Shown here one piece after another: positions 23,144 to 64,000 of a stretch of DNA of 64,000 bases (the stretch's first letter is position 1; every line of letters starts with the position of its first letter). The notes beneath the pieces were generated by a model. It was not told where the DNA came from, did no database searches, and saw only the letters and a list, made by a program, of their open reading frames with translations. The DNA is from Oikopleura dioica (taxonomy: Eukaryota > Animalia > Chordata). Made by a program: the position numbers and the translations under genes. The DNA is taken from contig OU015570.1 of the NCBI GenBank assembly GCA_907165135.1, positions 1,426,001-1,490,000 of the forward strand, given 5' to 3'.

Positions 23144-23215
23144 GATGAAATGGTGTAGTGGTTAACACACCGCACTACGTAGTAGGAGTCTCGGGTTCGA
23201 TTCCCGGTCTTACCA
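23144..23215 (+). tRNA. Degenerate tRNA (pseudogene or SINE head), anticodon position ACG
   Basis: A box TGGTGTAGTGG, B box GGTTCGATTCC, intact D and T arms, T5 at 23221-23225. Acceptor and anticodon stems are mismatched. Confidence 0.6.
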
Positions 23216-32403: not shown

Positions 32404-34800
32404 TTGTACTTCAGATTCAGAAATCAAATGGGGAGAGTCGCTCGAGAAATGGCGGAGCTGGTTCAAAACGGGCGTTACAATGTTAAGAAAAGGGAGAGAA
32501 TTAGAGCGTGCTCTTTAAACCAGTCCCCGGAGGATGAGAATGCCCCCTTTGGTCCAACGGAGATTGGCACGCTTATGGGTGGAAAGCCTTAGATTTGATT
32601 ATTCCGCTTTTAGAAGGGAAAATTACTTCATCGTGGGATATGGTCAAATTTAGGTCGGAGAAAGATTTTGTCTGCGGTACTTTTTGCGAATTTAATGATG
32701 TGTGGCTGCCAATGATCAACCTTATGCCGCTTGAAGTTAGAGGGCAGTTATATCACACGGTATTTAACGAAGTTAATTTGTTTGATAACCTCGACAGGAT
32801 TGATCCACCCAAATTTGTGTGGTATAAGAACCACAAGGTCTGCACCTTTTATACCAGAAACCCGGATAATAAAAAGCTCCTAGCTTATAGGGGTAAGAAT
32901 GAGCCCAGAGCGAAGTCGGGGAATATGAATACCCCAGAAATGTTTAATATCCAGTTTTTGCTTCTGGACCGCTCAAGGGCAGCCCTTTTCGAGTTGAGAA
33001 TAGAAGGGACATTGGAAGTTTCCATGAGCCCATTCTTAAGCAGCTTATAAGCTGGGCAGACAGTTCTTCGGTAGAAGTCGTCGATAAAACAAAAGTCAAC
33101 CCCTAGCTTCAAGCAAATATGGTTGTAGTGCCGAAACAAGGCGCAGACAAGGTCCGAATCTGCTACAACGGGGGCCCCCTGAAGGTCATAGAAAAATTTA
33201 CCCAGCCTTGTAGGCTGGATAGTTGAGCCGAAGTGTTGCACTTTATCCGCAAAGGGGACCTTCTGTCAAAATTAGACGATAAGAGTGGCTTCTTCCACCT
33301 CAAGTTGGACAATTTTAGTAGAGAATTGGCCAGCTTTTTCGCTATAATGCCGGGGCGTTTGGGCTGCCCAAGCTCCCCGGCATTTATCAGCTGGTTAATA
33401 ATACGCCAGTTAACTTTCTAAGGCATTTCGGGATTCATATCTTTTTGTATTTGGACGATCGCCTCATCATTTTGCGCCCTAAGAATAAAATCGAGGCAAA
33501 GGCTATTAAAAAGGACAGTCTTATTAACGACAGCAGTTGGCACTTTTCTTAACAGAGAAAAGAGTGACCTTCTTCCAAAATCAGAATTGGAGTTCTTGGG
33601 TTTTACCCTGAACACGGATAGGTGCACTTTCCGGATTCCAAATGATAAATGGCAGCGGTTCTGCTCAACCCTCACCAAAATACTAAAGGGAAAGTCCACG
33701 CAGTGGCCCTCGAAAAGCTCAGAGGAAAAATGGCTAGCTTTTCGTTGGTAGCGCTTAATATGCGCATGTATATTAGGGAAACGACCAATGCCCTGGTCAA
33801 TGCGACTGATGAGTGGATCAAGGTAGAAGGTTGCTGAAAGATGAGTTGCGAGCTTGGCTTGAGACTCGTGTGATCCTCAAAGAGAGATCATGGCTGAAAC
33901 CTGGTCTGAACACGGTTAAAACAGAGGTTTGCACTGATGCTTCAAACTCGGCTGCCGGGTTATACATTCAGTCCGAAAAGCTGGAATTGTCAGTTTCATG
34001 GCCGGAAGGTCACAGCATTGCAACTCAGTCGATTTTCGCTAAAGAAGCTTGGGCTATCTTGTATCTTATCAAGACTTTTGGCTCAAGATTTGAAAATTCC
34101 AGGCTGATGCTCTATAACGACAATCAGAACGTGGTTGATACATTTTTGGTGGTAGTCGGAACATGTACATCAACAACATTCTTGAGGAGATTCACATGCG
34201 AGCTCAAGACCATAATATAAAGATGGAAATAAGCTGGGTTCCCACTACTGATCAAAAAGCCGATGCGGCGTCAAGAACTCAAGACAACAAGGAAGCAATT
34301 TTTCGTGAGAGCGCCTTCTTGCGAGTTCAAAAGACCTAGGTCTTTGCTTTTCCCTTGATGCTCTGGCTACCGAGGCCAACACCAAATGCCCCTGTTTTAT
34401 TACAAGAAAAAGAGCGAGAGATCCTTCGCAACCGATTTCTTCACGGTTAAAGACTTCGGCAATCATGTGATCTGGGCTTTCCCCCAAGGCCTATCACTAC
34501 GGCAGTTTTTCTTATCTCCAAAAAGCAGCGAGAAAAAACTTGTAGGTTTTAGTTATTGCGGAACTCAAACACATATCTCCCATTTGGCCAGAAATTTTAA
34601 ATCTCCCTTATTTCAAAAGAATAGACTTGGATTACAACGAGCCTCCAGTCATGTACCCGTCAGCAGACTTGGACAGCGAACTCGGCTATTGGCGAATTCC
34701 GAAGAGAGTGCACTTCTCGCTGCTTCTGCATTCTCCCGAAAAATTTGCCTCAGTTCCTTTCTTCATGAGTCCTTTAAAAAGTCTTCCTATCCTCCTCTGA
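32404..34800 (+). pseudogene. pol: pol of element A: N-terminal extension, RT, RNase H, methyltransferase-like domain
   Basis: KLDDKSGFFHL; AFGLPKLPGIYQ; YLDD at 33448-33459; EFLGF; VCTDAS..KEAWAI..NDN..WVPTTDQKADAASR; LDALATEANTKC..IWAFP (MT-like). Multiple frameshifts. Confidence 0.88.
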
Positions 34801-34833
34801 AAACTTTTAAATTTTGAACCATCGTTAATTAGA

Positions 34834-36117
34834 ATGTCGCTTCCGACGTTTCTGCCCTTGAATGCCTCGACGGATAAGGCGATAAGACAACGCTGCGACA
34901 GATGGAGCTGAAAAATCCACCACGCCCATCTCGGAGCAAGACTACCGGAACATCTTGAATGGTCAACTGGCCGATCACGACTACAGGTTCATCTACGATC
35001 TCCTGGTCGACTCCAAAGAGGCAGTTAAGGAAAACATGCAGAGCATCAACGTCGCCACTAAGGAACGAGCGGAGGCGGTTCGAATCTACGATATCTGGAA
35101 GCGTTGCGAATCTTGGGTTGCCCAAGGTAATTTACCTTCTGGTTATTACTCCTCGTTGTTTCTTAAGGGAACAAGATACACGTGGATGACCAGCCTAATT
35201 GGGATCGTGACGCTGAAGACGTCAAGTCAGCTGTGGACAACGAAGAAGCTAAACTGCGATCTCTTCCCTCGGAACGCCTCAAGCTTCAAGATGCGCTTCA
35301 AAAGAACGAGGCCAATTTGAAGAAGTTCGTGATGCATAACATGCAGAGCTCTTTCGTCTTTGAGCAAGGGGGATCTTACTTCCAAGTCAGCCTGGGTGCG
35401 TCAAAACTTCGGCAGCCGAAGCACAAAAACCTGGATTACCTGGGCATTGAACTCCGCAACATTGTCACGGACGAGGATACCGTTCGCTCGCTTAAGTTCA
35501 AAGATGTTTCCACCTTCATCAGAACTTACACCGAAGCGGCGGGCCACATGCACAGCGACTACCACAACCTCACCCGCATCAAGTTGGAATTGATGAACAA
35601 CCCGCGAATGTCGAGATACGCCTGCTTGAACTTCATCAAATCCATCTGTGATTTGAGCTTGCAAACCGACATGGTGGCGCTGGTCAATCGCCTTATCCTC
35701 GATCCAGAGGCGAAGAAGGATCTGAGCAACAGCGTCGACCCTGCTACTTCAAACGAGCAGCTCGTCAACCAGAAGAGGGCTCCCTTCATGACGAAGAAAA
35801 ACTACCAGGAGACCCTCACCAAATACGCGTCAGAAATGACCGCCGAGCAGAAGAAAGAGTACGGCTACATTGAGCCGAAACGTCAGCGATCTCGTCAGCG
35901 TCAGCGCAACCGAAATGGCCGAGGTCGTGGTGGAGCTCGCAGTCACTGGGGTGGCGGATCATGAGGTGGTATCTCTTCCAACTGGGGGAACTCTGGTGGC
36001 ATTTCCGGCCAATGAAACAACAACTACCGTGGCCGAGGTAGAGGTAGAGGCTTGTACCGTGGTGGCGCTCGCTCTGGACAAGCGCCTTCTGCAGACAACA
36101 AATCGCCGCCGAAATAA
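34834..36117 (+). pseudogene. ORF-X of element A (coiled-coil N-terminus, RGG-rich tail), spliced
   Basis: A 41-nt GT-AG intron (35127-35167) joins WVAQG|NKIHVDDQPNW. The tail GRGRGG..RGRGRGRG carries two TGA lesions and there is a frameshift near the start. Confidence 0.75.
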
Positions 36118-36275
36118 CTTCTGGTCTTCTTTAAAAGAGCTACTAAGCCCAATTCCCTTTCCGGAGTCACCTCGACTGCCTGGGTAGCATACCATTTATC
36201 CTAGCTCATTTATTCTCCAAATTCTTCCTAAACTAATTTGATTAGTTTCGTTTAGTCCTTTTAGCGCTCTTTAGA

Positions 36276-37142
36276 ATGAGCGACAAGCGAAATTCTTTTC
36301 CTCTCAGCCCGTTTGAGCGAATGTCGCAGAAGGAGCGGATTAACTGGGTCATCTCCGAATGGAGAAAATCTGTTAAAAACAAGAGAAAAGCGGCCACTCC
36401 GGGGATGATGAAAAAATTCCTAGAAGAACTCGAGGTTCAGAACCCGAGTTCTCCAGTAGGATGGTCCGTCCTTAAAAGGGCAATCGAGTTCGGGGTTTCG
36501 GAATATCAGGGAAAGGACCTGATCCCTGGTGCCAGGGCTGAACTCAAGCTCTGGAGCAACGCAAGAGTGCGGGCGCAGGCTTCGGAAGATTTACAGTAGC
36601 CGAAGCAAGCGCCCGCATTCTCCGAAGGCCAAACCACTGATCTCTGCAAAGAAATGTGGAGATCTGACAACAACAAGGCCAAGCAGGCGACCGTAGTGGC
36701 GGGCCTATCTTTTTACACCGGAGCCCGCACTATTGAGATCTGCTCGTTGTACATCGAGGATCTAGAGGTGACTCAATCTGACGAGGCCCTCTTCATCTCG
36801 ATGCCTTTGCGTTTTTCCAAAGGTAACCCCAGGAAAGAGCGCAGAGAAAGACTTGCGCTCCCGATCTTGAGCTCTACCCCCATCCCGCTCATGACATGGC
36901 TGAGGTCAAGCCATATCCTGAATGGGAGATCAAAGGGCCGACTGTTCTCGGTGAACACTCGTAACTGTAACTATCATAACAAGGCTGCTGCAGCTCGCTT
37001 AAACTGGGATACAGCTCCGAGTGGACACTCTTTTCGAGTCAGTTTTGTCCTTAACGCTCTTGTTGCAAGAGCCTCAGAGGACGACATTATCCAAGCTTGT
37101 CGCTTGCGTCACGGTGACATGCTTAATATTTACCGAACGTAG
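36276..37142 (+). pseudogene. Tyrosine recombinase of element A (one nonsense codon at about 36597)
   Basis: YTGARTIE (Arg), FSKGNP (Lys), SGHSFRVS (HxxR), terminal Tyr in LNIYRT; LQ*PKQA matches LQYPKQA in element B. Confidence 0.9.
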
Positions 37143-42527: not shown

Positions 42528-43133
42528 CTGTCACAGCTTATAAGGTGGTCGTAAATGGTAGTGCATAGAGACGCCCCTGGTGACCAGAGGATTGTGCATC
42601 GACTTATCGAACCCCACAATTCTCGGGCCTCCGGGGACATCCGGTCAATCAGTGGTGAAGTGGCATATGTGGGAGAAAGTAAAGCGGATTGAAAAAGTTT
42701 TTGATCCATCTCTTCCGGCGGCACAAGCGGTCATTCTTTCATAGGTTCATAATAATCATGTTTATTCATTTAAGAGAATGTCAGATTTGCATCATGACTG
42801 ACAATGATTATGAATTCATTTTGTCAAAAGCGCGATAACACAGCGCGATTGATGAGCGCCAGTGAGAGAAGGAGTTATGGCCCGCACTTTCTCTTTCGAT
42901 CTTAAGTTCGCCAGAACACATTTCTCACTGAGAAATAAAATCGGAATGGGAAAAAGTTTTTCCAACTATTCGAAGATTTGAAAACGAACGTTTTTGCGCG
43001 GAAGTAGTGCATCATGAACATGAAGGACACGAATAAAAATAAAGATATTGGTTTGAAACAGACCACGATGATCTAGATATAACAAGTGAAAAGAAATTAT
43101 TGTAAAGAATGCGTAAAAAAAAATAACCAAGTA

Positions 43134-48514: not shown

Positions 48515-48744
48515 GTGGTAACAAGTACTCTCACGGGTAATTGCGAACTCAGGTCTACGCCTTAGTAGAGCTGTTTTGAGTCTTGAATCTTGTAGTCGCA
48601 GTGTATTGTCTATTTAGTCGTACACGCATAGACCCAAGTATAAAAAACCCGAGCAGGAATTTGACTAGCGTCAGGAGACCGGTACCAGGGTACTTTATTT
48701 GTGCCCTATTAGTTCCTAACGCCAAATCTCTCAACGGCGATCTT

Positions 48745-49605
48745 ATGCGCGATCAAACGGCATCTTTACGTTCGTCTGAGTCTGCGCTCTCGTCACTTGA
48801 GTTCACCGGCCGCGATTTTGATCGCACTGCACAATTTCTCGTGCTTGTCGACAAGATTCACGACACCTACATCGACTCCGACGCCGCACTTGAAGCTACT
48901 TTCGTCAAGCAGGTGAAAATGCGACTTGCCGAAAATCCCTACGCCCGACTCAAGGCAACCACGACTTTTACTTCAACCTGGGCCGAGCTGAATGCCTGGA
49001 TTACCGCCAATTTTGGTCTCACGTCAATTCAATTGTTCACCCGGGCGATCGAGACCGACTACAAGAAAAATTCCTGCTGGAAAGCCTTCGCCACCGACGT
49101 CGACTCTCGCATAGCCGCCGTTAAAGCCGCAGTTGTCGAGCAGATACGAGCCCGCAATGCCAAAATTAACGGCAAAAGCAGTGACCATGCCGAAAACGCG
49201 CCATCTGTCGATGACATATTTTTCTTCTTCAGCGCCGCCGTTGTGGCAGAAAGACTGAAATCACACGCCGGCCAAACCCACTCCCTTCTCGCGCAAGAAT
49301 GGAAATCGGTCAACAACGCCGCCGACCTAGCCTGCAAAGCCGAGTTAATAATTGCGCAACCCGGCCGCTCATCTTCTGCCTTCTACACGAGCTACTCTAA
49401 GCCGAGCACAAAGCCCGCCAATCCCTCTGACAAAAAGCCCGATCAGAAAAAGACCGGCAAAAAGTGGCGCGAGCCCTGTTAATTGGGCAGAGACTGCCGC
49501 AAAGGCAGAGCCGGCAAATGCGAATTCTACAACGGCCCCGGTTTCGGCTCCATAACCCAATTTTCTGCATTTGTCGCCAAGGACAAAGCTCCACAGCAGT
49601 CATAG
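48745..49605 (+). pseudogene. gag: gag with one in-frame stop and a Cys-rich C-terminal motif
   Basis: Follows the PBS; helical capsid-like region; PC*LGRDCRKGRAGKCEFYN. Confidence 0.7.
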
Positions 49606-49699
49606 TCGCTTCTCGTCGAGTGTTCGGCGGTTTTTCAATAACTGCTGATGTTACTATGTGTGCAACCTCAGCAGAACTCCTCACTTGCCACACGTACTT

Positions 49700-50690
49700 C
49701 AACCTCGATCTGTCTTTGCGCATAAAAGGCTTCAACCTCAAGTTTCGCGCTCTTGTCGATTCTTGAGCGGCAAAGAACTTCATTCCGATGCACATGCTCC
49801 CGCCTGCGGTTCAAGACTTGATAAAACCGTGCGACATGACTTTCAACGGATGTGGTACTATGAGTTCGAGCGGCACTATCTTTGGTCGCCTCTCACACGA
49901 AGCAACGCCGCATTTGTTCGACAATGTCACCTTCTATGTCGTAAAACAGAACTTCCCAGCCATTCTCGGCGGCGAATATTTCACCGGTATTCACTTCAAG
50001 GATGGCTCATTTTTAAGCGCGATGGTGACCCTATCGGCGAGTTCAAAGAAATGGCACGCATCCCTACTATCTAGGCCTCACCAAAGCTCAACGTGAGCGC
50101 CCGATTCCAAAACACCTGCACCCGGAAGTCGAATTAAACGTCTGCAGAATGGCCTCAGGAGGCATCATCGAGCCTTGTAAAGACGGCAAAGACTTCCACT
50201 CTCCACTCATCCCCGTCAGAAAGAGCGACGATGGATTGCGCGTCTGCAGCGACTTCAAGGAATCCCTCAACAAGGTGCTCACCAAAACGACCGATTTCTG
50301 GCCTTTTTGCACGGCCACAAAATCTTCAACTCCCTCGATTTATCCAAGGCTTACTGAACTTGGTCAGAGACCCACGCGACCGCCACAAAACGAATTTTAC
50401 ATTCGACTCAAAATGCTTGCGATATGTGCGCGTCCCCTTCGGACTTCGATTTTCGGGTGATGCATTCTGGAAAGCCATCGCCAAGATGCTCTCTAAGGTC
50501 TTGCTGAAGCAGAATTTCTGCACATATGTCGACGACATATTAGTGTTCTCCGATGACACAGCTACTCATCTGGAAGTCCTACGCCATATCTACGCTGTTT
50601 GCCGAGAATACGGCGCTCGACTCGGCGCGAAAAATGCTCATTCGGCAAATTCTCGACCCTATTCATGGGCCGAATCAAAGCCAATCAGAG
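49700..50690 (+). pseudogene. pol: pol remnant (protease, RT)
   Basis: LVDS*AAKNFI (DSG mutated), GIIEPC..FHSPLIPVRKSDDGLRVCSDF, VPFGLRFSG, YVDD at 50525-50536. Confidence 0.9.
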
Positions 50691-51571
50691 GCCTGCCTCC
50701 GGTTTCCCTTCTGGTCGCCGCTTTTTCCTTTCTGAACCGCCGCGCTCGCGCTAAAACCTGCGCCGCGCGTCCAGTCAACTCTACTCTTCACCCTAGAATC
50801 ATCATCGTCTGGGGGCTGTCGTTGGTTCTCGAAGAAGCAGATCATGATCCTGTCTTGTTTGCTTGTTTTTATCGCGTACCGTATTTATGCGGAGCGCGCT
50901 GCATTTTCCACTCACTTCGTTCTTGCCCGCTCTAAGGAGCCCTTCAAAATATACCAGTCCTATTTCTACGCTAGACCCTCCATGATCTTTTTTGTTACAT
51001 TATTAGGCATATAATATGCCGCATATTCTTGTAATACTCCTCGTTTTCTAATTCTGGCGAGATCTGATTTGAATAATGTTTCATGTAATCGTCACGCTCA
51101 GCCGAATATCTTGTTTGAAATTGCAATTGCGAACAGAGCCGCCCGCCACCCGAAATTGGGAATATTTCATATCCTCCTTGTTATCTGTGATCTCAATATG
51201 AACAAGGTGGAATTCGCACTTGGCTCCAATAATCCTGTGCTCTAGTATGCATTACACATTACGCCCTTTTTCTAGAGCCTGACGCAGAAGAGCGTCTTTC
51301 TGAATGGATGATCGAGTCGCTTAATTTTCATCCCCAAGAACTTTTTGAAAAACTGACGCTTATAATTTATCCGTAAGCGGAAATGTAATAAACGGGGGCC
51401 AATCCCCCAAAGTTATACGTACTATCATAGTCTATCAAGTAGCAGCAGCTTCTTTCATGAGCGAACCGAAAATATTGCTCAAAAGAATTCGCAGAACGCC
51501 GTTCTGTATTTTCAGAACGCCGTTCTGGCAGAACGTACCCGCCCGTCACCCTACCCCCTACGTTAGTTAGT

Positions 51572-52047
51572 ATTATAATCACGCACAAATAACAATGGTA
51601 ATGGGAATATTCCCGAGCACGCGCAATAACAATACTGTGGTAGAGAAAGAGCCTTTCTAAGGTAATGGACTGGGCAGTATGTAGGGCGTGTGCTCGTTTA
51701 CCCTACATGTACTGCTTATTTCAGGGATGGTGGGCGGGAGAGTCTTTTGATTCAGCTAGGAGTCTTATTGGTAATGCTTCTGCTGAGAAAAAGGCTCTAT
51801 TTAAAATTCCTTTTTTAGGTTTTAGCTGCAGGCTAAGAACCTTTTGAATGAACCTGCGTGATTTCGGGGCACCCGCTCGAAACCAGGTGCTCTCGGGCGC
51901 CTTTGACACCTTCCGCTGCTTCCTGGGAGTCCCTGCCTCTGGTTACTAGGCTTCCTGCCGCGTTCTATTTCTAGCGGGCTGCTAATCCCCTGTCCTAGAT
52001 TCGGATTATAATCACGCACAAATAACAATGGTAATGGGAATATTCCC
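51572..52047. repeat. Pair of identical 43-bp direct repeats (51572-51614, 52005-52047); putative 3' terminus of element B
   Basis: ATTATAATCACGCACAAATAACAATGGTAATGGGAATATTCCC occurs twice. Confidence 0.9.
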
Positions 52048-52246
52048 TCCCTACCATTCTCGTTATTCTCGTCAATCGATGTCTAAGGATTCTTAATTTG
52101 GCAGGAAAAAGGATGGGAAGACTCTTTTTCATGTTGACAGCGTTATCTGTGGTCTAAGCTTCAGTTGTTTTCTGTTTCTTTTGCTTTTGATTGGCTTCTT
52201 GTGGTTCTTGGGGTATCTGAAACCTTTTTAAATGAATGAGTCTCCC

Positions 52247-53329
52247 TTATTGTGCCGTTTTTACCTGAAGAGAGTTGTCTTCGTTGTCGCTTCCGTTTCG
52301 CTTTCTGGCTCTTGATTTTGCGACGCTGACGGGCGCTCCCAAGTTGCTACACTCGAGCCAGCATCTTTCGTAGTAGTCCGGCATCGAGCTTCCTGGCGCC
52401 CAGCGGAGCGTGTGCGCGAGTGTTTGTTGCGAGAGGCCAGAGCGTCGTCCTTCGATGTAGAAACTGACTCTGCCTGTGTGTGCGGAAACCTGAATTGGAT
52501 TCTTACAGTTCGTGAGGACTTTTCGTTATGAACCTTCTTAGAGAGTCCTGCTTTGGCTCCGTAGCGGGCTAGGTAGTCCGAGGCGATTCTGGTGTGACCT
52601 TCGAGAGTCTTGAGGACGAGTCCTGTCGAGAAAATTTAGCTTGGGGTAAGTCGGATTCGGATTTTACCTGATTCTCGGTCTCTCACTTGTGCTCGGAGCT
52701 CGAGAACTAGCGGGACGCCGCGCTTCATTTCCATTGGAATGGTGAGAGTCTCCATGCGTTTGCAGAATGGGTCCGTTTTGCTGGTTCGGATGTGGAATCG
52801 CCAGAACTCTTTTCCGTCCTCCTTGACGCTTTCGCGATCTTCGATTCTGAGGTTGAGGGCCTCCTTCATTCTGGAACCCGTGGTGAAGCAAATGAAGAAG
52901 GCGATAACTGCTTCTCTTGGCTTTGGCTTGTTTGTTTTCATAAGCTCTTCCCACAACTGAATCGCTTCGGGCTCGTCGACGACTTCCGCTTGCTTAAGGA
53001 AAGGGTTATCGCCTAGAAGAGCGGAATTGGTTTACCTTGGGGTATTGGAGCGTCTCGGCTGCGGATTCCCGAGCTCTGTGCTCGCACCAGGTCTTGATCT
53101 TCCTTTTCTGTTTGGCCCTGAGAGTTTTCTTCGTTTGAGACGCGATTACGTCTTGGATCGTTGTGATTCCTTTTTCGTAAGCGTAGGCCTTGAGTCTTGG
53201 TCTGATGAGGAGCCTGTCGAGAAAGTGCTGAATCACGTCGTCGGTCTCGGCTTCGTCATAGCTGAAGGTAGCCATTGCCTCCGCCACTTCCCAGTGTTCT
53301 AGAAGATTCTTGTAGTCGAGCCAAGTCAT
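52247..53329 (-). CDS. Spliced tyrosine recombinase of element B (about 316 aa, intact)
   Basis: Exons 53329-53036, 52992-52668, 52622-52534, 52489-52247 (a further 3' intron is possible). Motifs TGSRMKE, TSKTDP, SAHTGRVS, LRW, DYY. Confidence 0.88.
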
Positions 53330-53505
53330 GAATCTGAATTGAGTCTTTTTGGGCTCGAGTTTTAGAGGGCCTGGATATTTAAAGTGTGAAAGGCTTTTTA
53401 GATTGGCAGTGTTTTTGAAAAAGAAAAACTAGGCGAAAAACTGCGCACTGCCAGAGGCTGTTCTTCGCTTAAGGAGTGGATTGATTCTTAAAGAGAGTCT
53501 TGAGA

Positions 53506-54793
53506 TTATTCGACTCCGCCTTGGTCTAGAAACTTCTTGGTGTCTCCTCCTTGATTGCTTCTACCGCCGCGGCCTCGCCCGCGACCTCGTCCTCGGCCTC
53601 CCGAATGTCCGCTTCCTTCGGCGTTGAATTTGGGGCTCGCATTTTCCCCTTGATGGTCCGTTTTCTGCTTCTTGCTTTGGCCGCCATTCGAGTGTCCTCC
53701 TCGGCGCCCACGGCCTGGTTTAGAGTCTTTTTCGGTGCGCCAGTCCTCCGAACCATCGCAGAGATTAATGATCATCTTTTTGAAGGTCGGATGAGTCGTG
53801 TTCATTGTCATGGCTCTGTCGAATTGGTGGCGCACGTTTGGGCGCATAACCGGCTAAAGCGGCTAAGGATTATGAGTCGTGGTGTTTTTTTTAAATGGTA
53901 GGTTTACCGTGAGGGATAGAAGCGCGTCTTTGCGAGTCATGTCCGGCATACGAATCAGTTCGTCGACGACGCTTTCGATGATCGCCCGCTCGGTGTACTC
54001 GGGAGTCATGGCTCTCTTATAGTTTCCGAGCAACTTCAGGAGCTTTTCTCGTCTGAAGGTCCGTTGAGTCTTGGCATCCGTGACGAACGCCCGGAATTCC
54101 TTGCCCATGTCTCGGAGGGAGTCTCCTTCATCTTTTGGCAGGCTTGTCGAGCCGACTTGAGTCTGAAAAATTAGGATTTTAGATTTTTTCTTTTCTTTTT
54201 TACTTTTTATTCTTACCATGAAATAGGATTCTACGCCAGTGAGCGGGTCCTTTTCCTTGAAGACCGCTGCAGACTCGGTCGTGTTTTGGGAGAGCTCGGT
54301 GATTTTCGTCTCCCGAGCTTTGATTTGGGCGAACATGGACCCCTTGAGGCTGTAGCGCTCCATCTTGTCGGCAATCAGGCGGCGGAGTTTAGATTCTATT
54401 TCCGATGGATTCCAACGATCATAAAATTTGTTCTCCTCCTCCGATCGCTTTTTGGCGTTGGGCTCTCGTTTTTTGATCTCGAGACTCTTGTCGCGGTTGG
54501 CTTCGAGTTCCGCGATCTCTTTCTATAATGAGAGGGAGTTTTTCCGCGTTTAGTGGAGATTAACTTACAATGAGGAAGTCGGTGAGCTTGTCGTGAGTCG
54601 CCATGTCTTTTCTGATATCCTCGATTTCCACGATGAGTCGGTCAGCCTCTTCCGTTTGAGCTTGAGTCTTTGAATGCTCATAGAATGCTGCCTTGGTGAT
54701 CTGGACTCTGACCGCCCGCGTTTTCGCTTCCTGCTCCGTGAGCTTCGTGTGGTCAGAGAGAAGCTTGGAGAGGGTCTTGGTCTGTTCTGCCAT
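53506..54793 (-). CDS. Spliced ORF-X of element B (377 aa; coiled-coil plus RGG tail, intact)
   Basis: Exons 54793-54569, 54522-54217, 54162-53908, 53853-53506 (three phase-0 introns). SYFMTQVGSTSL..GKEFRAFVTD aligns without gaps to element A SYFQVSLGASKL..GIELRNIVTD. Confidence 0.82.
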
Positions 54794-54898
54794 TTTTTCA
54801 ATTGATTCCGAGTCTAAAAAATAGGAGTTTTGAGATTCAGATTTTATATTTTCCGTGGATTGGCTGAATGGTGAATCTAAGAGAGAGGTTACAGAGCC

Positions 54899-57796
54899 TC
54901 AGAGTCTATTAGCAATAATTTTTATGGTTGAGATGTTCGTCGCGACTTTCCAGTAGCCTTCAGCAGTTTTCACTTTTGAGGGCGTGAGGATGGAATCCGC
55001 CGGTATGTCAAAGATTCTGTAGCCTTTGAGTCTGGCCTGTGTTACCACTACTGGTTCGGCTTCAAAGCATGGCACCACCAGAGCCCATGGCGTCGCTATT
55101 TCGGTGAGTCTGTTGTAGTATTTTTGAGAGATTTTGGAGGCGGGAACGCATATAATTTTCTTCCGATAAGTGCGTGGATTGGCAAGCTTAGGAAGTCTTT
55201 TCCAAAGGCTCCTTTCGTCTCTCGGCGTGCGATGAAGTCTCTGCATTTATTGTTGAGTGGCTGAACGGAATGAAAGTTTATTTGCGAGTCCGCTTCGCTG
55301 TTTGAGTCTTACCGTTGCTGCCACGTCGATGTCGAGCAGATCCCGGAGGTGAGATTGGAGATAAGCGAATCCGATTGCCGTTAGTTTTTGCTCCCTTGAG
55401 TCCAAATCCCTGGAAGGAGCGTCGGCCAGCTGCTTCTTTGTGCTGACCCAATCGACCTTCATGTCTATGTTGAAACGATGCGCCAGAGTCCAGATTCTGA
55501 CTAGAATCCGGTTCATTTCCGGGTCTTTGCTACCCGCTATCGCTCCTTGAACCACACTGTCGTTGTCGCAGAGAAACAGTGCTTTCTTGTTCTGAAGCCG
55601 TACCACTCGAGCGTGTATTTGATCGCGAGGGCTTCTTTGATACCGATGTGTTTGTCTGCTACGTCCGGCTCCCACGCGAATCTTTCTTCTAGCTTCCAGT
55701 GCTCGATGACGATGGCTCCTGCGTGCGAAGAAGCGTCTGTGTATACAGTGAAACCCCAACTTAAGGCCAAGCAACTTAAGGCCACTTTTTTGAAAAAACC
55801 CAAAAATATGTCATCCGAAAAAAATCCAACTTAAGGCCACTTTTTTTCCATTTTTATTCACAGTAAGTAAATCGCAGGAAAACAGGCGAGAAATGGGGAA
55901 GATAAGATATTTTTCGTAAAAAATTTCTTGGAATTTCTTTTCCGGTTTCTTGTCGATTTAATTTGGTCCAATGCCTCTTGAGTCCTTTTTCTTCCAGAAG
56001 ATTCCAGAGTCTCCATTCCTCTCGGACTTCTTGAGTCAGAATGCAGGATTCTTCTTCGTTTCTGATGGCTTCACTGATGAGGATTGTTGTTTGACGGATG
56101 AGCATTCTCATGTTCGGGAGGACTTCCGCCATGCTTGCCATTGTGCCTCTGATTCTTTCCAGCGTCCGCGTCGGAATTTCTGCCTCTGCTTCGGCCTCTT
56201 TCATGAGATTCTTTAGGGCTGACCACCTTGGGATTTGCATCTCTACCGTTTCGTTTTCTGTGTCTAGAATGAAGCCCAGGAATTCTATTCTTTGGGTAGG
56301 CTCGAAGGTGCTTTTCGCGATGTTAACATAGCCACCTAGCGCTACTAGCGTCGCTACCGTTGCCCAGACTTCCTTGCTGGTTTTTTCTCCCGACAGCAGT
56401 TGGCGGCGTTCTTCTTCAGATTCTGGAGTAACAGCCAAGAGTCTGTCATCCAAACAAAGCGTGATTTTGATTCCGTTTTTCCTCAGGAAATTGACTCCAC
56501 ACAGATTCATGAGTTGGTAGATTCCGGGCGCGGCTGGGATTCCGAAGGCTAGGATATTGTTTCTGAAATATTGGCCTCCCCATTCGAAGCAGGCGAGTTT
56601 CTTGCTCTCTTCGCTGAGCGGGAGCTGGTGGAATCCTAGATTTGAGTTTTTAGTTCTGAGGCTTTTGCTGTTGTTTTACCTTTTTTATCGTCGAATTTGT
56701 ACAGTAGATCCCCTCTTTTGAGCATCTGAATCGCTGTTCCAATGCCTTCCAATTTACACGGGAACGTGTATAGTTGAAGCGGTTTGAGAACTCCACCGTT
56801 CCAGCAGACTCTTGTCTCTCTGCCTGGCTTGTCAACCAGAAAGAATCCCGCGCGGATCCAGCATCCTTTGGCTTCTGTGACTCTTGTTACTGAGCCCATT
56901 TCGCACCAGTCGGTGATTTGTTGGGCAATCTCATCGCTTCTTTCTCTTACAGCTTCCTGGCTCGGGATTGTGAGAGTCTTGAATCGCTTGCCGATTTTTT
57001 CGTATGGTCGAGGCACAAATTTTGAGAGTCGTAGTCTGTGGTTGTACCAGGTTTTGAAATTTCCGTCCATCTTCCTAAGAGTGTCCGCGTTGGCTGCGTT
57101 TCTTTTCCAAATAGTTACCAGTTCCTTTCGCTAAAATTTGACTGGCTTCTTCGGCGGTATTCTTTTGAGATTCAAAAATAGGTCTGCTCCTGCGTGGACG
57201 AAGTGGTAGATAAAAGGCTTCACTTTCTCGGGCATCTGATGGATTAGGACTCTCCAGTTATCTTTGTTGTGGGTCCATTGGCCGGCGATGAAATCGGATT
57301 CTTTTTTGAGCGCCAGGTCCCTCCAGTCGGGCTTGATCTCGTTATTAAGGACTTTTATGACTCTGTGAAGCAGATCTGTCTCGTAGACTCTCCATTCAGG
57401 TAAGGATTTTGGGCCGGTGATTGGATCGTTGTGAATGTTTACTGGGTTTATGATTGGAAATCTCGGTCTATTGAAGATCCCTTTGTTCGCCATGGCCTGC
57501 ATCTCTGATTCGATTGTTTCCCAGCTCTTCGTCTTCTTCGTTTGCTCTCTTTCGTTTGAATCCCGCGGCTGTGCGGGCGGACTCATAGCTTCTCGGAATC
57601 GGGATTTTCCAGAAGAGTTTCTCGTATGTGGTGCCATAAAGTGAGGATGGATCTTCGAGTCCTCTCTCGAGGCGGTTGTCGATGTCGTTGAGATTGAGGG
57701 CTCTATATTCAGCATCAGCGATGCAATCTCTCGGTGGCCAGATTTTACGCAGCGTACGGATTGCGTCCCAGGCCGTGTAATCTTGATTCGAGTCAA
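54899..57796 (-). pseudogene. pol: pol of element B (N-extension, RT, RNase H, MT-like), with intron(s), a MITE insertion and CLDD
   Basis: Intron 56636-56679 splits DDKKG|FHQ. Motifs AFGIPAAPGIYQ, CLDD (56445-56456), EFLGF, YTDAS, KEALAI, CDN, WVSTKKQLADAPSR; C-terminal GYW is shared with element A. Confidence 0.88.
55746..55945. mobile_element. pogo-like MITE fragment inserted into the RNase H of element B
   Basis: TA|CAGTGAAACCCC at 55744, at the Tyr codon of YTDAS; similar to 43134-43230 and to about 8235-8290. Confidence 0.65.
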
Positions 57797-58679
57797 TGTT
57801 CGTTAAGAATTCTTTGAGCGTCAAACTAATGGGATTCGATGCTCCGCAAAGCGTGTTAAGGTGAGTTCATGCTGATCTTGCTGCACTTGATAGGAGTCTT
57901 GGAAAGATGCATCGCGTGTTCGTTATCTGGAAAAGGATTTCTCCAAATATTGAGTTGGCGATGGAGATGCAGAGTTGTCTTTCTTTCGCGAAGGAAGCGT
58001 GTCTTTTGTCCGGGCTCAACTCTAGAATCTTTTTGAATCTGATGTTCCAAATGTGAGCTATGAGCGTCATTCTTGGTGATGCTCGAGAGTTGAGGTTTTC
58101 TGGTGGCTTGCATCTCGCTAAGATCATTCTGAAGATGGCTTCTGCAGATTCATTACAGAGTCTTCCCAAGATCCAAGCGGCGGCCTCTTCTAGCTTCCGA
58201 AGATCATCTTTTGAAACTGAGTCTCTTTCCAGTGGCTCCATCATTTTGGCCCAGAAGGTTATTTCCGCCGAATTGTAGACGCTAGAAGCGTGGACTTGCT
58301 TCATTAGCTTCTCCACCACAGGTCTAACTGTCAGTTCCAGCGTGTCTTGAATCGTCTCTAGATCCACCTTGTTTGTGGACGCTTGTCTTCGGTTGATTCC
58401 TATGGATGGGCTGTGCGCGATTATGGCAATGGTTTGGAAGGCGTCTAGCAGTTGAATTCCCTGGAGACCCTCATGCTCGGCTTCTTGGAGGATCGTTTTC
58501 ATAATTTTTGAGGCCTCTTGGGACTCGGAGATGATTTTGGCAGCTTCTGTTGCTAGATTATTGATCTTGTCATCCAGCGTCTCGCCGTAGCATAAGATTC
58601 TTTTTGGTGGGATGGAAGCGTTTGTGTTGAGGCTGTTTTGGATGTCCCAAACGAGCCCTTTGAGTCTCTCCAGGTTCAC
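57468..58679 (-). pseudogene. ORF1 of element B (gag position, about 400 aa, one TGA), overlapping the pol 5' end
   Basis: ORFs 57867-58679 and 57468-57824 are in the same frame, separated by one TGA; homologous to element A ORF 31576-32064. Confidence 0.75.
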
Positions 58680-59069
58680 GCTAGTGCTTTGCCCTTGCTG
58701 AGGATTCTTCGAGTCAATTTGGCTCTCGTTTGGCGGGCTTTCCGGTTGGTCCGAAGGTGGAGCTTCGTCGTTCGAGTCTTCTTTTTAGGGGCTCTTTTTT
58801 TTTAAAGTCATTGGTTAAGAGGATTCTGGCTTTTTTGTGACTCTTTGTTGCCCTGGCCTGACTCTGAAGGTAATTTATATTCCTCTGGCATTCCTTCAGG
58901 CTCTGCATTTTGACTCTCCATTCTGAATTTTTGGCTCTTTTAATTTTGGCGAGTTTTCATATATTTTAATAACAAGATTTTTTATCTTGTAGCTTGAGGA
59001 TTTACGGTTTAGATTCCTATTTTATGATGCTTCGAAGTAAATAGGCGAGGATCTTCTGGTGAGATCGAA

Positions 59070-61766
59070 TTATTTATTATGTACAGCTTTTTTGGAATTT
59101 GGAAAATGGAAAGAGGTAAGTTCTGTTTCAATGTTTTGAGGAAAAAGGCAGTATGAGTCTAAGAGTCTGGAAAGAGTTTCTTCTCTTCTTTTTCTAGTAG
59201 TGGCGTGGAGGTTTTGGGGCGGCGTCTGAGTGCACTGGGGGAATCGGGATGTCGTGGAGTCTGAAGAGTCGGACGAACACGAATCTTTCTGCTCCGCCGC
59301 TGACTCGAAGAGTGTGTCTGTGCGTCTGCTCCAGTCCTGTTGTTCCTTCTGGGCTTGAGTCTCTGGGAATCCGACTGTAGCTTCATCTTCTTCTCCGCCG
59401 GATTCTTCCATGATTTCTTCGTCTGAAGAAAAGCCATCTTCGGAGTCTATTGGAGCATTTTGGCTGGCCGGAGGCATGAGTTGAGTTGGGTCTTTTGGGT
59501 GGAGTCTTTTGATTGTTACAGTTTTAATATGATTCCCTTTTTATGTGGTTACTTTTGCTCGATTTTCGATGTTTATGAATTTTATGACTCCTTCCTGAAC
59601 GGGCGTTGTACGAGTCTTCGTACAGATCTGGTTCTGAGACGCTGTCTGCCTCTTCGTTGTTGGCCGAGTCTTGTGCTGGAGCAGGGTCTGGTTGCTGAGT
59701 CTGAGTCGAAACTGAGGAGGTTGGATTCTCCGTCTGAGTCGCCGAGTCTGCCGAGTCTGAATCTTTCAGAAAGAGGGTTTTGAATTGTTTTTTTAATGGA
59801 TTTTCGATAATTTTGGATTCTTTGAAATCAGGACTGATTCTATTTTTTGAATTGGCCTAAGTGAGTCAAAATTGAAAGGCCAAGAGCTCATCCACCTTTT
59901 CTTATGTGGATTTGTTTTATGGTGCGTCATTTTTTCTTTTAATTTTAATTCGAGTTTTAATTCCGATTATTATTCTCAATGAATCTCTTTTTCTTTGAGA
60001 TTCTTACAGCCTTTTCCTTGGGTGGTTTGGGATTCCTGGCATTTTGCCTGCTGCGCTTCCACCGGGTGAGTCTGAGTCGTTCCGTCTCGCCGCGACGTCC
60101 AGCCGATGGTCCTTGAATCGCGTCTTGCCAGCGTAGCTGCAATGTCTTTCGGGACTCCATCGCTGACGTACTCGTTTCGTCTTTGCTTCTTCCAGCTACG
60201 CAGAGAGTCTTTGCCATCTTTGGAGAGTCGATCTTGGCGGAGGAGAAAGTCCGCTCTTGACTTTTGAAAGGGTTTTTTAAAGTTCTAAGGCTCGACTTAA
60301 TGTGTAAAGTTTTAATTTGACCCTTTTCCTTGAGAGCTGAGACTCTTTCTTGATACGCTGGGAGTCTTCCTTCCGGGATCACGAGTGACTCCTCAATGTA
60401 GACGATGTTGAGGAGCGGGTGGACGTCCATGGCGGCTTTGGCGGCGTTGAGGCAGCCGTAGAAGAGACTGTGGTCTGACTGGGCTCGGTCGTCCTCGGCG
60501 ATTTTCTGGTTTTCTTCGCGCACGAGCTCGGAGAGGACTCGGGAGATGTCGTTGATGGATTTCTGCCAGCCATCGAGGGACATCTGAGCGTTGGGGTCGG
60601 TGAGTCCTTTAATGAGAGTCAGAATTTTTTAATAGAAGCAGAATCTAAGGCTTGAGAGTCTGTTATGGAAATTGTTTTTCAAGATTTAAATTTTCTTTTA
60701 AGTTCTTTTTTCTTTTTATTCTCTGACCCATTCCTTCGACCATTTGCTCGAGAAGATTTTTGAATCTGTCTCCAATCTTCAGTCTGAGTCGAATGAGCAT
60801 TCGTCCCTTCGATTCCTGCGGGAACTGAGTCACCGGGTCCATCTTGATCGCCGATTTGATCTTCCTCCAGTAGTCTGGCTCGTCGATCGGGTTTTTGGTT
60901 ATTCCGGCTTTCTCTCGGAGTCTTTCGAGCTCTTCAGCGTCGTGAATCTGTGCGTCTTGTGCGTCTCGGGTCATTTCTAGGGTCTGAAGAAACGCCTTTG
61001 TTAGCAAAGAATCGAAATTTTGGTTTTGGCTAGTTTTGTTTGGAAGAGCGCAAGGAAAATTTGAAAAGAAAGAGCGAAATTTTAAAAAGAAACACGAGAA
61101 AAAAGAGTCTAAATTAAGATCCGGAAGGAAAGAATCTTTTTTTTTTTGATTCTCTGGTTTTGACGCGTCTGGTTCTAGCGTAATCCGGTGGTTTTTCTCT
61201 TTATAAAGGGCTCTGGATGATTCTCTTTTTGTTGGAGAAAAAATGATTCTGATTTAGGCAATTTTCGCTTGAGCCCTGGCTTATCCTGGCTCGTTTTGGT
61301 GCTCCGCCAATCAGCGCGCTCTATTTCGTGAGACAACTTTGCCACTTTCCCACGGTCTCCAATTTGGATTTTATGCTATTTGATTCCAATCTTTAGATTC
61401 TTGAGACCATTTCCTGATTCTTGTGCTCTTTCGGATCTTTTTTGTGGAGATTGGTGGTTGAGGAGGTGCGCAATTCGAGGAAAAAGTGTTTTTCTCTCGT
61501 AAGACTCTTTTTTCTGTGATTTTTGCTAATTGAGAGTGAAGTAGATTCTTTTTGAGTGAGAATTTATCAGATTTAGCGAGTCTTTTCCTGAGGTTTGAAG
61601 ATTCTTGAGCTTGTTTGCGGCAGAAAAGGGGGGTTTTTGGGCGATTTTTGAGTCTTTTCGAGGGCTCCGAGTCTCTTTTTCTTTTCTTTTTACTTTTTCT
61701 TTGGAAATTTCTGATTCTTTTGGGCCCTTTTCCTGACTGTATTTTTGGTGAAGTTTTTGGAGTCAT
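59070..61766 (-). CDS. Cluster of accessory ORF/exon fragments (59070-59477, 59957-60583, 60663-61007, 61371-61766)
   Basis: All on the minus strand with A-rich GT-AG-like gaps; acidic/basic low-complexity and helical segments; no motif recognised. Confidence 0.45.
61190..61320 (-). promoter_or_regulatory. Putative internal promoter (CCAAT box plus TATA)
   Basis: Minus-strand CTGATTGGC (about 61305) upstream of TTTATAAAG (about 61200), in an intergenic gap. Confidence 0.35.
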
Positions 61767-61769
61767 TTT

Positions 61770-64000
61770 CTAGTCGCTTTCCGTGGCTTCAGCGACATTC
61801 AGACGAGCGAATCGTTCTTCGATGTTTTGACGGTCTTGAGACCAGACGTTCGGGAAGAGATTCTCGACTTTGGCTTCCTCTCCGTGGTCTAGGTCAAGAT
61901 TCTCCGCTGCCTTGATTCCGTCGAGGATTATGTCCCTGATGTGGGTCGTGAACGGTGCGTCTGGGACTAGAATGTGGGTTTTGGCCGTCACATTCTCCCA
62001 GGTTGTTCGATTGGCTCTTATTTTGAGCTTGTATATTTTCGAGACTGCTCGGTTTTTAGCGTCGAAGCCGTTGCAGCATCTGACCATGGTTTCCGCCACC
62101 CTAGGGTGTGCCCAACACGGGGTAAATGCAGATTCGTAGTCCCAATCGCAGGCCATTTGGAAGATTTCCCAGAGTCCCGAGATTCTTGGGTTTTTGTCCC
62201 CTTGGAGTGTTCGATGAAGACTCTTCGTCGGGCCCTGGGTGACGAATTTAACGTAAGGTGCCGACCAGGTGACGAGAGCTTCTCTGAGTTTCTTGGCGTC
62301 TTTTTGTGAAGGGAGAATCAGCACCGTGTTTTTCTGGCATGTGAGTTCGCTGATAATTTTCGCCACTTCCATCCATTTGTCTCCAGATTTTTTGGAGATA
62401 GAATCCGCCAGTCTCGGGAGATGTTGATTCTTTCTGGCTGAGGTGTTTCCAACTACGAAAGCGTCGAATTTTCCTCCGCATCTTTCTAGCCCTGCGTGGT
62501 AGATGACTATTCCAGCTGCTCCCGGATTCTCGAATCGTGGCCTTTTTAAGACTCTTCCGAACTTCCGGAGACTTTCGCTGAGGTTCGCTGCTGTGTCGTT
62601 TTCTCCTTGAAAAAGGATTGCCGTGGATTTCCAAGCGTTTACGATAGAGTCGAATCCTTCGACTTCGCTGCTCTGGATTCTTTGGATGAGGTCTTCGTCA
62701 GCGTCCTTAAGCATAGTTGTTTTGAAAGATTCGGAGAGTTTGTAGAAGGTTTCTTGCCATTCCTCGCTGTTGATGGACATTTTTGTGCCCTGGGGGAGTC
62801 CTTTCTGTATGAAGCCGTTTGCGACTCGGCATTTCTCTGAGCAGTCTGGTTGGCGAGATTCTTTGAGTTCTTGGAATCCTTGATGTGTTTTACACCAAGT
62901 CGTGCTCGCCTCCGCTTCCCCACACATTGGCCATTCGCACGATCTTTCTCTTTTTTCTGGTTGTTCTCGAAGGAATCTGAGTCTCGTGACTCCCGTGACT
63001 TCTTCTCTTTTCTGCATCCAGGTGTCGATGAAGTTGTCCAGAGTCTTGTTTGGGCTGAATCTTTTGCCATTTGCCCAGTTCCAGCCAGTTGATAAGATTC
63101 CGAGATTATGCTCGAGTGAGCGCAAGTGAGAATGGGCTTTTGTGTCTCTTACAACCTTGGCGATGATTTCCAGGATGATCTTCTGAGTTCGAAAGGGGCG
63201 GTTGACTCCGACTAAGCAGGCTCCTGAGGCGTAGAAGTTTCTCGTTGGCTTCTGGAACGCCGAGATGCATTCTTTGACGTTTTGAGTGGTCCAAGGTTTG
63301 GAGGCTAGCTTCTCAAGCGCTTCTGATTCTAACGTCGTGAGCGCTGGGTGGGCTGCAAGGGAGAGGAGGGATTTCACTTTGATATGATCAGAGTCCTCGC
63401 CGTAGTTGAAAACCCATATTTGAGGTACGACTTTGTAAGGAATCCACAGGATCCAGTGGGAATCCCCTTTTCCAACTTCTTTGACTCTAACCGTGGTATT
63501 AATCGGGTACACCTTTTTCGCCGCTGACTCCAGCCACTTTTTGAGGGACCGGGAATCTTTGAGTTCGCTCCAGTCCACGTGCCATTGGGTGGGCATTTCC
63601 TTGCAGCTTCCGTCTTGGCCAATGACTGAGTCTTGGATGAGCTGTTTTTGCACCAAGTGAAGCAGCAGTGGTGAGAGAATCTTTGTTAAGGGAGTCGGAT
63701 TCGGAATGGGTGAGTCTTCCGGCGCATATTCGCCGATTATGTCGATGATCCATGCGTTCACATTCGCCGGTTTTTTGTTTGCCCATTGGGTGTCCTCGTT
63801 TGCTTTGAGTTCCAGCCAGGCATTTTTCTGATGGCAGATCTCATGCCAGTCGCTGTGGAGAGACTTCAGCATCTTGAGCGAGTCCAGTAGTTCTTCTGGC
63901 GTGATAAAAGCGTCTGACCTTGGCATTGCGTCGAAGATCGTTTCAAGACCTTTCTTTATGAGTCTTCGGAGCCAATTGTCGTCCGTGAAGCTTGGGCGTT
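61770..64000 (-). CDS. Large ORF (over 740 aa, open to the window edge) with a C-x4-C-x9-C-x2-H finger and a putative SGNH-hydrolase-like fold
   Basis: The frame is open upstream of the Met at 63926. Motifs CEWPMCGEAEASTTWCKTH; ILFQGENDT..FENPGAAG..FDAFVVGNT..VLILP..WAHP. Confidence 0.7.
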   Translation of the reverse strand, partial: RPSFTDDNWLRRLIKKGLETIFDAMPRSDAFITPEELLDSLKMLKSLHSDWHEICHQKNAWLELKANEDTQWANKKPANVNAWIIDIIGEYAPEDSPIPNPTPLTKILSPLLLHLVQKQLIQDSVIGQDGSCKEMPTQWHVDWSELKDSRSLKKWLESAAKKVYPINTTVRVKEVGKGDSHWILWIPYKVVPQIWVFNYGEDSDHIKVKSLLSLAAHPALTTLESEALEKLASKPWTTQNVKECISAFQKPTRNFYASGACLVGVNRPFRTQKIILEIIAKVVRDTKAHSHLRSLEHNLGILSTGWNWANGKRFSPNKTLDNFIDTWMQKREEVTGVTRLRFLREQPEKRERSCEWPMCGEAEASTTWCKTHQGFQELKESRQPDCSEKCRVANGFIQKGLPQGTKMSINSEEWQETFYKLSESFKTTMLKDADEDLIQRIQSSEVEGFDSIVNAWKSTAILFQGENDTAANLSESLRKFGRVLKRPRFENPGAAGIVIYHAGLERCGGKFDAFVVGNTSARKNQHLPRLADSISKKSGDKWMEVAKIISELTCQKNTVLILPSQKDAKKLREALVTWSAPYVKFVTQGPTKSLHRTLQGDKNPRISGLWEIFQMACDWDYESAFTPCWAHPRVAETMVRCCNGFDAKNRAVSKIYKLKIRANRTTWENVTAKTHILVPDAPFTTHIRDIILDGIKAAENLDLDHGEEAKVENLFPNVWSQDRQNIEERFARLNVAEATESD

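Follow-up and report, generated by a model that had tools for sequence, protein, structure and literature searches.

A DIRS-order retroelement family of Oikopleura dioica that appears to keep its coding-sequence introns through transposition

The 64,000-nt stretch of Oikopleura dioica DNA analysed here (the window; part of contig OU015570.1 of the Okinawa assembly, GCA_907165135.1) holds a retroelement, element B, whose genes appear to be interrupted by U2-type GT-AG introns of host-typical length, with at least eight in this copy. Our preferred reading, to which we assign a probability of about 0.7, is that B belongs, as a damaged copy, to a ~14.7-kb, intron-bearing family of the DIRS order whose introns are transmitted via an intron-containing template. 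Retrotransposition is the textbook route of intron loss, and intron loss is the standard proof of RNA-mediated movement. The family described here seems to keep 8-16 short coding introns, both in young copies and in lineages with protein identities down to 35%. Intron retention would then no longer be confined to Penelope-like elements and to long terminal repeat (LTR) elements with a single intron, and the mechanistic question arises how a transcript with ~16 constitutive introns stays unspliced for reverse transcription.

Introns of element B and of its relatives

Coding pieces of B were obtained by stop-to-stop translation of the minus strand from 64000 to 51500; exons were translated one by one with their phases tracked, and exons of relatives were searched singly. 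A first-pass annotation of the window, made from the sequence alone, had listed eight gaps, seven in B and one in a second element, A. On the coding strand, each of the eight (41-54 nt) is bounded by a 5' GT and a 3' AG, and the donor reads GTAA in six of the seven listed for B. The list overlooked a 52-nt GT-AG intron at the boundary between the RNase H and MT-like regions (Table 1), which accounts for one of the three frame changes in this part of B that we had considered as frameshifts. With this intron included, all eight predicted introns of B are GT-AG and measure 43-54 nt (median 45.5 nt). O. dioica introns have median lengths of 48-51 nt; for the Okinawa assembly the figure is 49 nt, with 11% non-canonical introns (PMC8008620).

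Removal of the gaps restored open frames in the two genes for which the first-pass annotation had proposed it. The ORF-X gene (ORF, open reading frame), whose product is coiled-coil-like with an RG-rich C-terminus, runs from an ATG at 54793 through four exons and three phase-0 introns to a stop at 53506-53508, with no internal stops. The tyrosine recombinase (YR) gene runs from an ATG at 53329 through four exons, with intron phases 0/1/0, to a stop at 52247-52249, and its last exon holds the HxxR and catalytic Tyr motifs. A full-length copy of the family on chr1 of the Okinawa assembly (OU015566.1; L015 hereafter) has an annotated ORF-X model of 384 aa, a length compatible with three introns, and the lengths of the L015 gene models suggest roughly 16 introns per element.

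Table 1. Features of elements B and A in the window, with predicted introns
Feature	Position	Strand	Remarks
Element B	51567..64000	-	3' 12.4 kb of a ~14.7-kb DIRS/PAT-type retroelement; 5' end outside the window
ORF1	61773..63998	-	742 codons, open at the window edge, intron-free
pol exon, N-terminal part of reverse transcriptase (RT)	56680..57130	-	ends ...DDKK+G
Intron 1 (RT)	56636..56679	-	44 nt, GT-AG, phase 1, within the Gly codon of DDKKG|FHQ
pol exon, C-terminal part of RT and RNase H	55313..56635	-	from exon alignments; broken in B
Intron 2 (RNase H/MT-like boundary)	55261..55312	-	52 nt, GT-AG, phase 0, after DVAAT
pol exon, MT-like region	54902..55260	-	frame change near 55136-55150
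ORF-X gene	53506..54793	-	exons 54793-54569, 54522-54217, 54162-53908, 53853-53506
ORF-X intron 1	54523..54568	-	46 nt, GT-AG, phase 0; in L015 with 3 indels
ORF-X intron 2	54163..54216	-	54 nt, GT-AG, phase 0; in frame and stop-free in B
ORF-X intron 3	53854..53907	-	54 nt, GT-AG, phase 0
YR gene	52247..53329	-	exons 53329-53036, 52992-52668, 52622-52534, 52489-52247
YR intron 1	52993..53035	-	43 nt, GT-AG, phase 0
YR intron 2	52623..52667	-	45 nt, GT-AG, phase 1
YR intron 3	52490..52533	-	44 nt, GT-AG, phase 0, donor GTTC
3' terminal repeat block	51567..52047	-	b1 52000-52047, A2 ~51739-52002, b2 51567-51614
Defect, in-frame TAG	57131-57133	-	immediately precedes the RT exon; frame open here in A, L002 and L015
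Defects, frame changes	near 55600; 55136-55150	-	indel comparison with L015
Defect, insertion of a MITE-like repeat	55746..55941	-	196 nt, B only; interrupts the RT/RNase H coding exon
Defect, 977-nt deletion	59284/59285	-	matching segment L015 6987-7963, inside an upstream gene
Element A	32500..37142	+	decayed copy of a distant, intron-poor lineage; RT and RNase H pieces in several frames
A, ORF-X-like	34886-35961	+	part of element A
A, YR	36246-37139	+	PF00589, E=9e-5; stop at 36597-36599
A, candidate intron	35127..35167	+	41 nt, GT-AG; weakly supported

The exons of B were compared by exon-wise tblastn with L001 (Bergen reference assembly, GCA_000209535.1), with a second family, likewise found in Bergen (L003/L011), and with three lineages from metagenomes, Tara among them (L005, L013 and L014). 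These lineages share the intron residues and phases at protein identities of 35-70%. At every B junction, extra DNA of 39-79 nt was found at the same residue in relatives, with GT-AG boundaries in 31 of the 32 lineage-by-junction cases, GC-AG in the other (L014), and always the phase seen in B; the chance of finding GT..AG at a boundary fixed by homology is ~0.003. Intron lengths vary freely across the lineages while the adjoining residues are conserved. Intron 1 has the same position and phase in L001, L003, L005, L013, L014 and L015, and is absent from L002, A and L012. The GC donor of L014 at this conserved RT intron (46-88) is a non-canonical variant. Intron 2 lies at the same position in L001, L003, L005, L013 and L014 and is also present in L015; all six intron-rich lineages have it. 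In the ORF-X gene, whose exons have homologues in L001, L003, L005 and L011, intron 1 has the same position in L001 and L003, intron 2 is found at the same residue in L001 (45 nt) and L003 (52 nt), and intron 3 in L001 (39 nt), L003 (46 nt) and L005 (42 nt). For the YR gene the counterparts are 40 nt (L001), 42 nt (L003) and 40 nt (L005) at intron 1, 52 nt (L003) and 39 nt (L001) at intron 2, and 79 nt (L003) and 47 nt (L001) at intron 3. Public gene models (P0002, P0014, P0041, P0043) join exons at exactly these junctions, and the annotations CBY11109, CBY14967, OKI2018_I69 chr1.g1079 and PAR.g11282 model them without comment. These are AUGUSTUS or GAZE models, those of Okinawa having been built with RNA-seq hints.

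Within the intron-rich clade, four intron positions in the RT region vary among lineages. The intron in DDKKG|FHQ is absent from L002, that in PKSEQ|ERF occurs in L002 only and that in ELERIR|GTQ in L005 only, while family C and L003/L011 have one in LxxQ|AE that B's family, L013, L014 and L005 lack. Intron positions thus appear to have changed between lineages by gain and/or loss, as the first-pass annotation had supposed. The direction of change was not fixed by single-exon trees (RTa, part of RTb, and RNase H), in which the attachment point of the outgroup was inconsistent; since such trees leave the root unfixed, gain and loss are not separable from them.

Element A is ~33% identical to B and has an RT broken by several frame changes, while its nearest relative, P0044, has an uninterrupted 805-aa pol ORF. 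In agreement with the earlier description, A is without all B introns at alignable places, where no gap is seen. Three of the interrupted motifs (YPK|QA, SYFM|TQVG and DDKKG|FHQ) had been called uninterrupted in A; they are indeed contiguous there, but the 'Y' of YPK corresponds to the stop codon at 36597-36599. The intron proposed for A itself fared less well. It has GT-AG ends, but the frame switch that it would repair lies inside a 150-nt stretch that is open in both frames, and a 1-nt indel explains the switch equally well. Among the relatives of A, L012 and P0044 contain no alignable ORF-X with which it could be compared.

Copies of the family and the condition of B

B has its closest copies in the Okinawa assembly itself, and the top matches of its RT exon are O. 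dioica proteins and marine-metagenome ORFs. L015 spans 790-15515 of its locus, with flanks unrelated to those of B. B is colinear with positions 2266-15515 of L015 at 95-97% nucleotide identity, its 3' limit at 51567 matching the end of the L015 element, and it is colinear at the protein level with L001, across ~13 kb at 28-65% identity. The terminal repeats of L015 are 99-100% identical to each other, which indicates a recent insertion, and this young copy keeps all eight B introns with GT-AG ends. Between B and L015, substitutions are as frequent in introns (25/373) as at third codon positions (103/1339; p=0.58), while first and second codon positions differ at only 35/2678 sites, far fewer than the introns (p=6e-9). 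A similar pattern was obtained for indels. Of the 21 in window 57300-52240, nine fall in 382 nt of intron and six in ~4030 nt of exon (p=8e-7), the exonic ones being an in-frame 21-mer, a 1-nt change at the end of YR, three of the defects of B and a 1-nt change in the MT-like region of L015.

The same holds for Bergen, where L001 and two paralogous copies (L009 and L010) lie on different scaffolds, are 89-99% identical, and have a common 3' end but different flanks. All three retain every intron. Differences in their exons are distributed over the codon positions as 22/9/142 (dN/dS ~0.04), with gaps in none of 1026 codons, while in five introns 13% of sites are substituted and 11 columns are gapped. 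This purifying selection between paralogues covers RT, RNase H and the MT-like region. The divergence between copies therefore arose under selection for the spliced frames with the introns already present, which argues that the introns did not originate after immobilisation. The first-pass annotation had named intron-free young copies as the observation that would speak for such a late origin; L015 and the three Bergen paralogues all carry the full set. Judged from these comparisons, the introns appear to be real, old and inherited through transposition. L008 (10191-16121), which we also considered as a young copy, spans only the intron-free 5' part of the element and was set aside for this purpose. 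It consists of two 5' fragments of B's family (ORF1 region) in a head-to-head palindrome of ~6 kb whose arms are 99.8% identical, with an A repeat before each arm, on an unplaced scaffold of 110.6 kb; the palindrome stems either from duplication at the DNA level or from misassembly.

B itself has five defects (Table 1), and L015 is open at each of the five sites. The MITE-like insertion (MITE, miniature inverted-repeat transposable element) is missing from L015 at 95-97% identity and must therefore be recent; further copies of the repeat lie elsewhere in the window, at 8234-8305, 21051-21099 and 43132-43243. We considered this 196-nt repeat as an intron, but there is no GT near its 5' edge, the options left are non-canonical, and it is not found in L015 or in other relatives, so that it is better read as a disruption. 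The 977-nt segment present only in L015 has the density of GANTC sites that characterises the family (see below), and its absence from B is thus due to a deletion in B. Some of the 1-nt changes and defects may stem from Nanopore error, as the Okinawa assembly, whose small scaffolds are repeat-rich, has a stated error rate of 1.3% (PMC8008620).

Termini, encoded proteins and related systems

The ends of the element consist of split direct repeats in the order A1...b1-A2-b2, with the internal pair downstream of YR. The whole arrangement is present in L015, and the b1-A2-b2 block is seen in B, where b1 and b2 are 48-nt repeats of 96% identity; a copy of the A repeat also lies at the 5' end of both L008 and L015. 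In L015, A1 (790-1055) and A2 (15077-15342) are 99.2% identical, b1 (15032-15079) and b2 (15468-15515) are 48 nt long and 100% identical, b1 abuts A2, and a 125-nt spacer separates A2 from b2. The internal b1|A2 junction equals what results when the end of the element is joined to its start, sharing a 3-nt overlap that reads GAA in L015. GAA is also found at the end of the L015 left flank (L015 770-800 and 15489-15545 and window 51537-51593 were compared), which suggests that the recombinase crosses over at a trinucleotide core without target duplication. Inverted terminal repeats were not found: self-comparison of L015 and L010 gave direct repeats only, and the 3' end of B holds no inverted pair. 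By the criteria of PMC4157794, the element is PAT/Ngaro-like and not Dirs1-like. The repeats within one copy are closer to each other (99-100%) than copies are among themselves (95-97%), which fits regeneration of the ends during replication through cDNA.

The RT N-terminal exon is 51-67% identical to L001, L002 and L005 and 98.7% identical to P0041. The RT piece of B (57130-55857) matches RVT_1 with E=1.4e-6 and 28.7 bits, slightly under the cut-off of 29.6, which the homologous exon of L011 (6645-7226) passes with 35.9 bits; PF00078 is precomputed for P0002, P0014 and P0041. For the putative RNase H region, L011:7388-7837 matches RVT_3 with E=5.9e-4 (20.2 bits, cut-off 21.6) and RT_RNaseH with E=0.06; its position and conservation fit. 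A conserved region of ~120 aa follows RNase H at the MT position (B 55260-54902) and has no Pfam family match. The annotated spliced YR products of L001, L010 and L015 carry PF00589 in their database records, and single exons reach E=2e-4. ORF1 is 27.7% identical to L001 1827-3821 and 94% identical to P0013, extends over 990 codons stop-to-stop in L015, and is followed by several further ORF pieces before RT. When every stop-to-stop piece of B was searched with Pfam, weak RT and YR matches were the only ones: ORF1, ORF-X, the MT-like region and the upstream ORFs had none, and no piece matched integrase, protease or GIY-YIG families. At window 57471-57802 (minus strand; L001 8501-8875) we observed two overlapping open frames, both similar between B and family C. 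The upstream ORF, whose product has a basic tail at its end, extends into the beginning of pol; the arrangement resembles a gag-pol style overlap or frameshift site.

DIRS1-like elements are known from O. dioica (Volff et al. 2004, as cited in PMC3266345 and PMC5240408) and are enriched on its Y chromosome (PMC3266345, PMC5240408). B's family resembles the DIRS order in that RT and a putative RNase H are followed by a region at the MT position and by a separate YR gene, with no integrase match, in its internal repeat that mimics joined ends, in its probable integration at a 3-nt core without target duplication, and in being multi-copy in O. dioica. It differs in its size of ~14.7 kb with at least seven genes, including an ORF1 of ~990 codons and an ORF-X between pol and YR, in having direct instead of the inverted repeats of Dirs1-like elements, and in its many apparently obligatory introns within coding exons. 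We found no description in the literature of introns in DIRS, PAT, Ngaro or Oikopleura DIRS elements, although a mention in Volff et al. 2004 or Denoeud et al. 2010 is possible.

Among other retroelements, Penelope-like elements retain introns, a trait described as highly unusual (PMC8557442). The retention of spliceosomal introns after retrotransposition is common to both groups, but Penelope-like elements have a telomerase-like RT with GIY-YIG, usually a single ORF, and few introns that often lie in the 5' UTR (untranslated region), whereas B's family has a DIRS-type RT, a tyrosine recombinase and at least eight introns inside coding sequence. The first-pass annotation had called Penelope-like elements the known exception to intron purging. 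This is too narrow, as the LTR elements Ogre, BARE1 and CRR also splice a single intron, which they keep, and must avoid packaging the spliced RNA (PMC3735527). Like these elements and retroviral env, B's family is proposed to use one transcript both as spliced mRNA and as unspliced template. In Ogre, BARE1 and CRR, however, there is one mostly facultative intron between ORFs or at the edge of an ORF, along with LTRs and an integrase, whereas each gene of B's family would need multiple constitutive splices for translation. A parallel for the handling of an unspliced template is the export of Cer1 genomic RNA (PMC10309623). Cryptons share the tyrosine recombinase, possible introns and integration at short cores; they are without RT and RNase H, which in B's family are conserved under strong purifying selection.

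Explanations considered and further features of the window

Since the introns reach daughter copies, the template would have to be an intron-containing form of the transcript. In the cycle that we propose, a single sense transcript would be spliced into mRNAs, and proteins would be made from spliced mRNA only, while an unspliced or nuclear, intron-containing fraction of the same transcript would be reverse-transcribed. A circular or junction-forming intermediate would then be integrated by the recombinase at the 3-nt core, and an occasional partly spliced template, or the insertion of a new intron, would alter the intron content. The sequences show how the introns are built, that they are conserved and passed to young and old copies alike, and that the spliced frames are under selection; that the junctions are spliced, which RNA serves as template and how the product integrates are inferred. 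Several points weigh against this reading. No fully intact copy was seen: besides the five defects of B, L015 has the 1-nt frame change in its MT-like region, and L001 has two in-frame stops, at 2544-2546 (ORF1) and at 11430-11432 (between RNase H and the MT-like region), the latter being where the public pol model P0002 stops, as well as an N gap at ~9350-9470. Retrotransposition of Dictyostelium DIRS-1 removes an engineered sense intron (PMC7192593), so that the retention of ~16 introns would need special sorting of the RNA. Finally, the encoded recombinase could in principle move DNA directly.

This last point leads to the rival that we take most seriously, though we consider it unlikely, in which the element spreads as DNA by Crypton-like excision and re-integration or by segmental duplication, so that its introns are never exposed and RT is dispensable or otherwise used. 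A YR is encoded, the direct repeats could recombine into a circle, the inverted duplication in L008 has arms of 99.8% identity, and YR-bearing DNA transposons with introns exist (Cryptons; PMC13465315). Yet the dN/dS of ~0.04 over RT, RNase H and the MT-like region does not suit a dispensable RT, copies share exact ends but not flanks, and cut-and-paste movement does not predict repeats that are closer within a copy than between copies. Somewhat less probable still is a passive retention of the introns, by which weak introns are spliced inefficiently, leftover unspliced transcripts serve as template without any sorting, and introns should be lost frequently. The variable presence at four RT positions, acceptors that are often AAG or TAG and not of the strongest type, the one GTTC donor, and the observation of some unspliced cDNA for tagged DIRS-1 (PMC7192593) would all agree with it. 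However, eight introns are fixed in position down to 35% amino acid identity, no copy from the roughly eight intron-rich lineages sampled is without more than one or two introns, and if splicing were not regulated, only a very small share of transcripts with ~16 introns would escape it altogether.

Two alternatives remain. That these are domesticated or immobile host genes inherited vertically, whose introns would say nothing about transposition, is very improbable: both genome annotations treat the loci as ordinary genes, and they are under strong purifying selection, but each genome has several copies on different scaffolds or chromosomes, with different flanks and the same termini, the terminal split repeats have near-identical arms, some copies carry disabling mutations, a MITE insertion or deletions, and at least three diverged families occur side by side in the same genome. 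Next to no weight falls on the idea that the gaps are decay insertions in dead copies with coincidental GT..AG ends and frame restoration. Both A and B are damaged, and two of the B gaps are multiples of 3, one of them stop-free, but insertions of this kind should not recur at the same positions and phases in 3-6 independent lineages, nor vary in length between conserved residues, nor concentrate the indels and substitutions within themselves. The cross-lineage comparison thus refutes this explanation. Returning to an intron-containing RNA template, a bolder version of it is tempting but tentative, and we hold it to be possible rather than probable: an obligate multi-intron lineage would have acquired ~16 host-type introns and would keep them in each cycle by actively separating its mRNAs from the unspliced template, for which ORF1 or the RG-rich ORF-X may act as an export or packaging factor. 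If this were true, introns may disguise the element as a host gene to an intron-based genome surveillance, and the lineage-specific intron positions would form a dated, multi-copy record of intron gain in Oikopleura. The family offers a natural system in any case, with paralogous copies of datable divergence that differ in introns at defined sites in a host with extreme intron turnover. Because ORF-based finders of transposable elements and prokaryote-style gene callers fragment such elements, as seen in the metagenome ORF calls, the elements are likely under-counted.

B is also marked by the palindrome GANTC, which is 4-5-fold over-represented throughout, at 30-46 sites per 2 kb compared with 2-14 elsewhere in the window. 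The sites occupy each of the three codon phases as well as introns and spacers, and exceed the number in synonymous-codon shuffles (43 observed versus 24±3). The enrichment is bounded by the ends of the element, both in B (window 51567-64000) and at the independent locus L015 (1000-15000), and is found in B's family only, not in A, in the Bergen families, in family C or in L003, L005 and L011; the inserted MITE has zero sites. Conservation of the sites above background was not seen between B and the 97% identical L008 copies (6/276 versus 69/2865 columns varied).

The window is repeat-rich and gene-poor. A third RT-coding sequence, belonging neither to B nor to A, lies on the opposite strand just past the 3' end of B (50231-50935, plus strand; RVT_1 E=9.5e-11), with ORFs at 48583-49482 and 49658-50074. 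An Rfam search across the whole window returned one tRNA and nothing else. At 18869-19223, 27225-27610, 23144-23215 and 44604-45356 the window further holds tandem arrays with units of 14/15 nt (CACGAACCTAGTC...) and 55 nt, a tRNA gene and several MITE-like inverted-repeat units common to its 15.7-kb and 44.7-kb regions.

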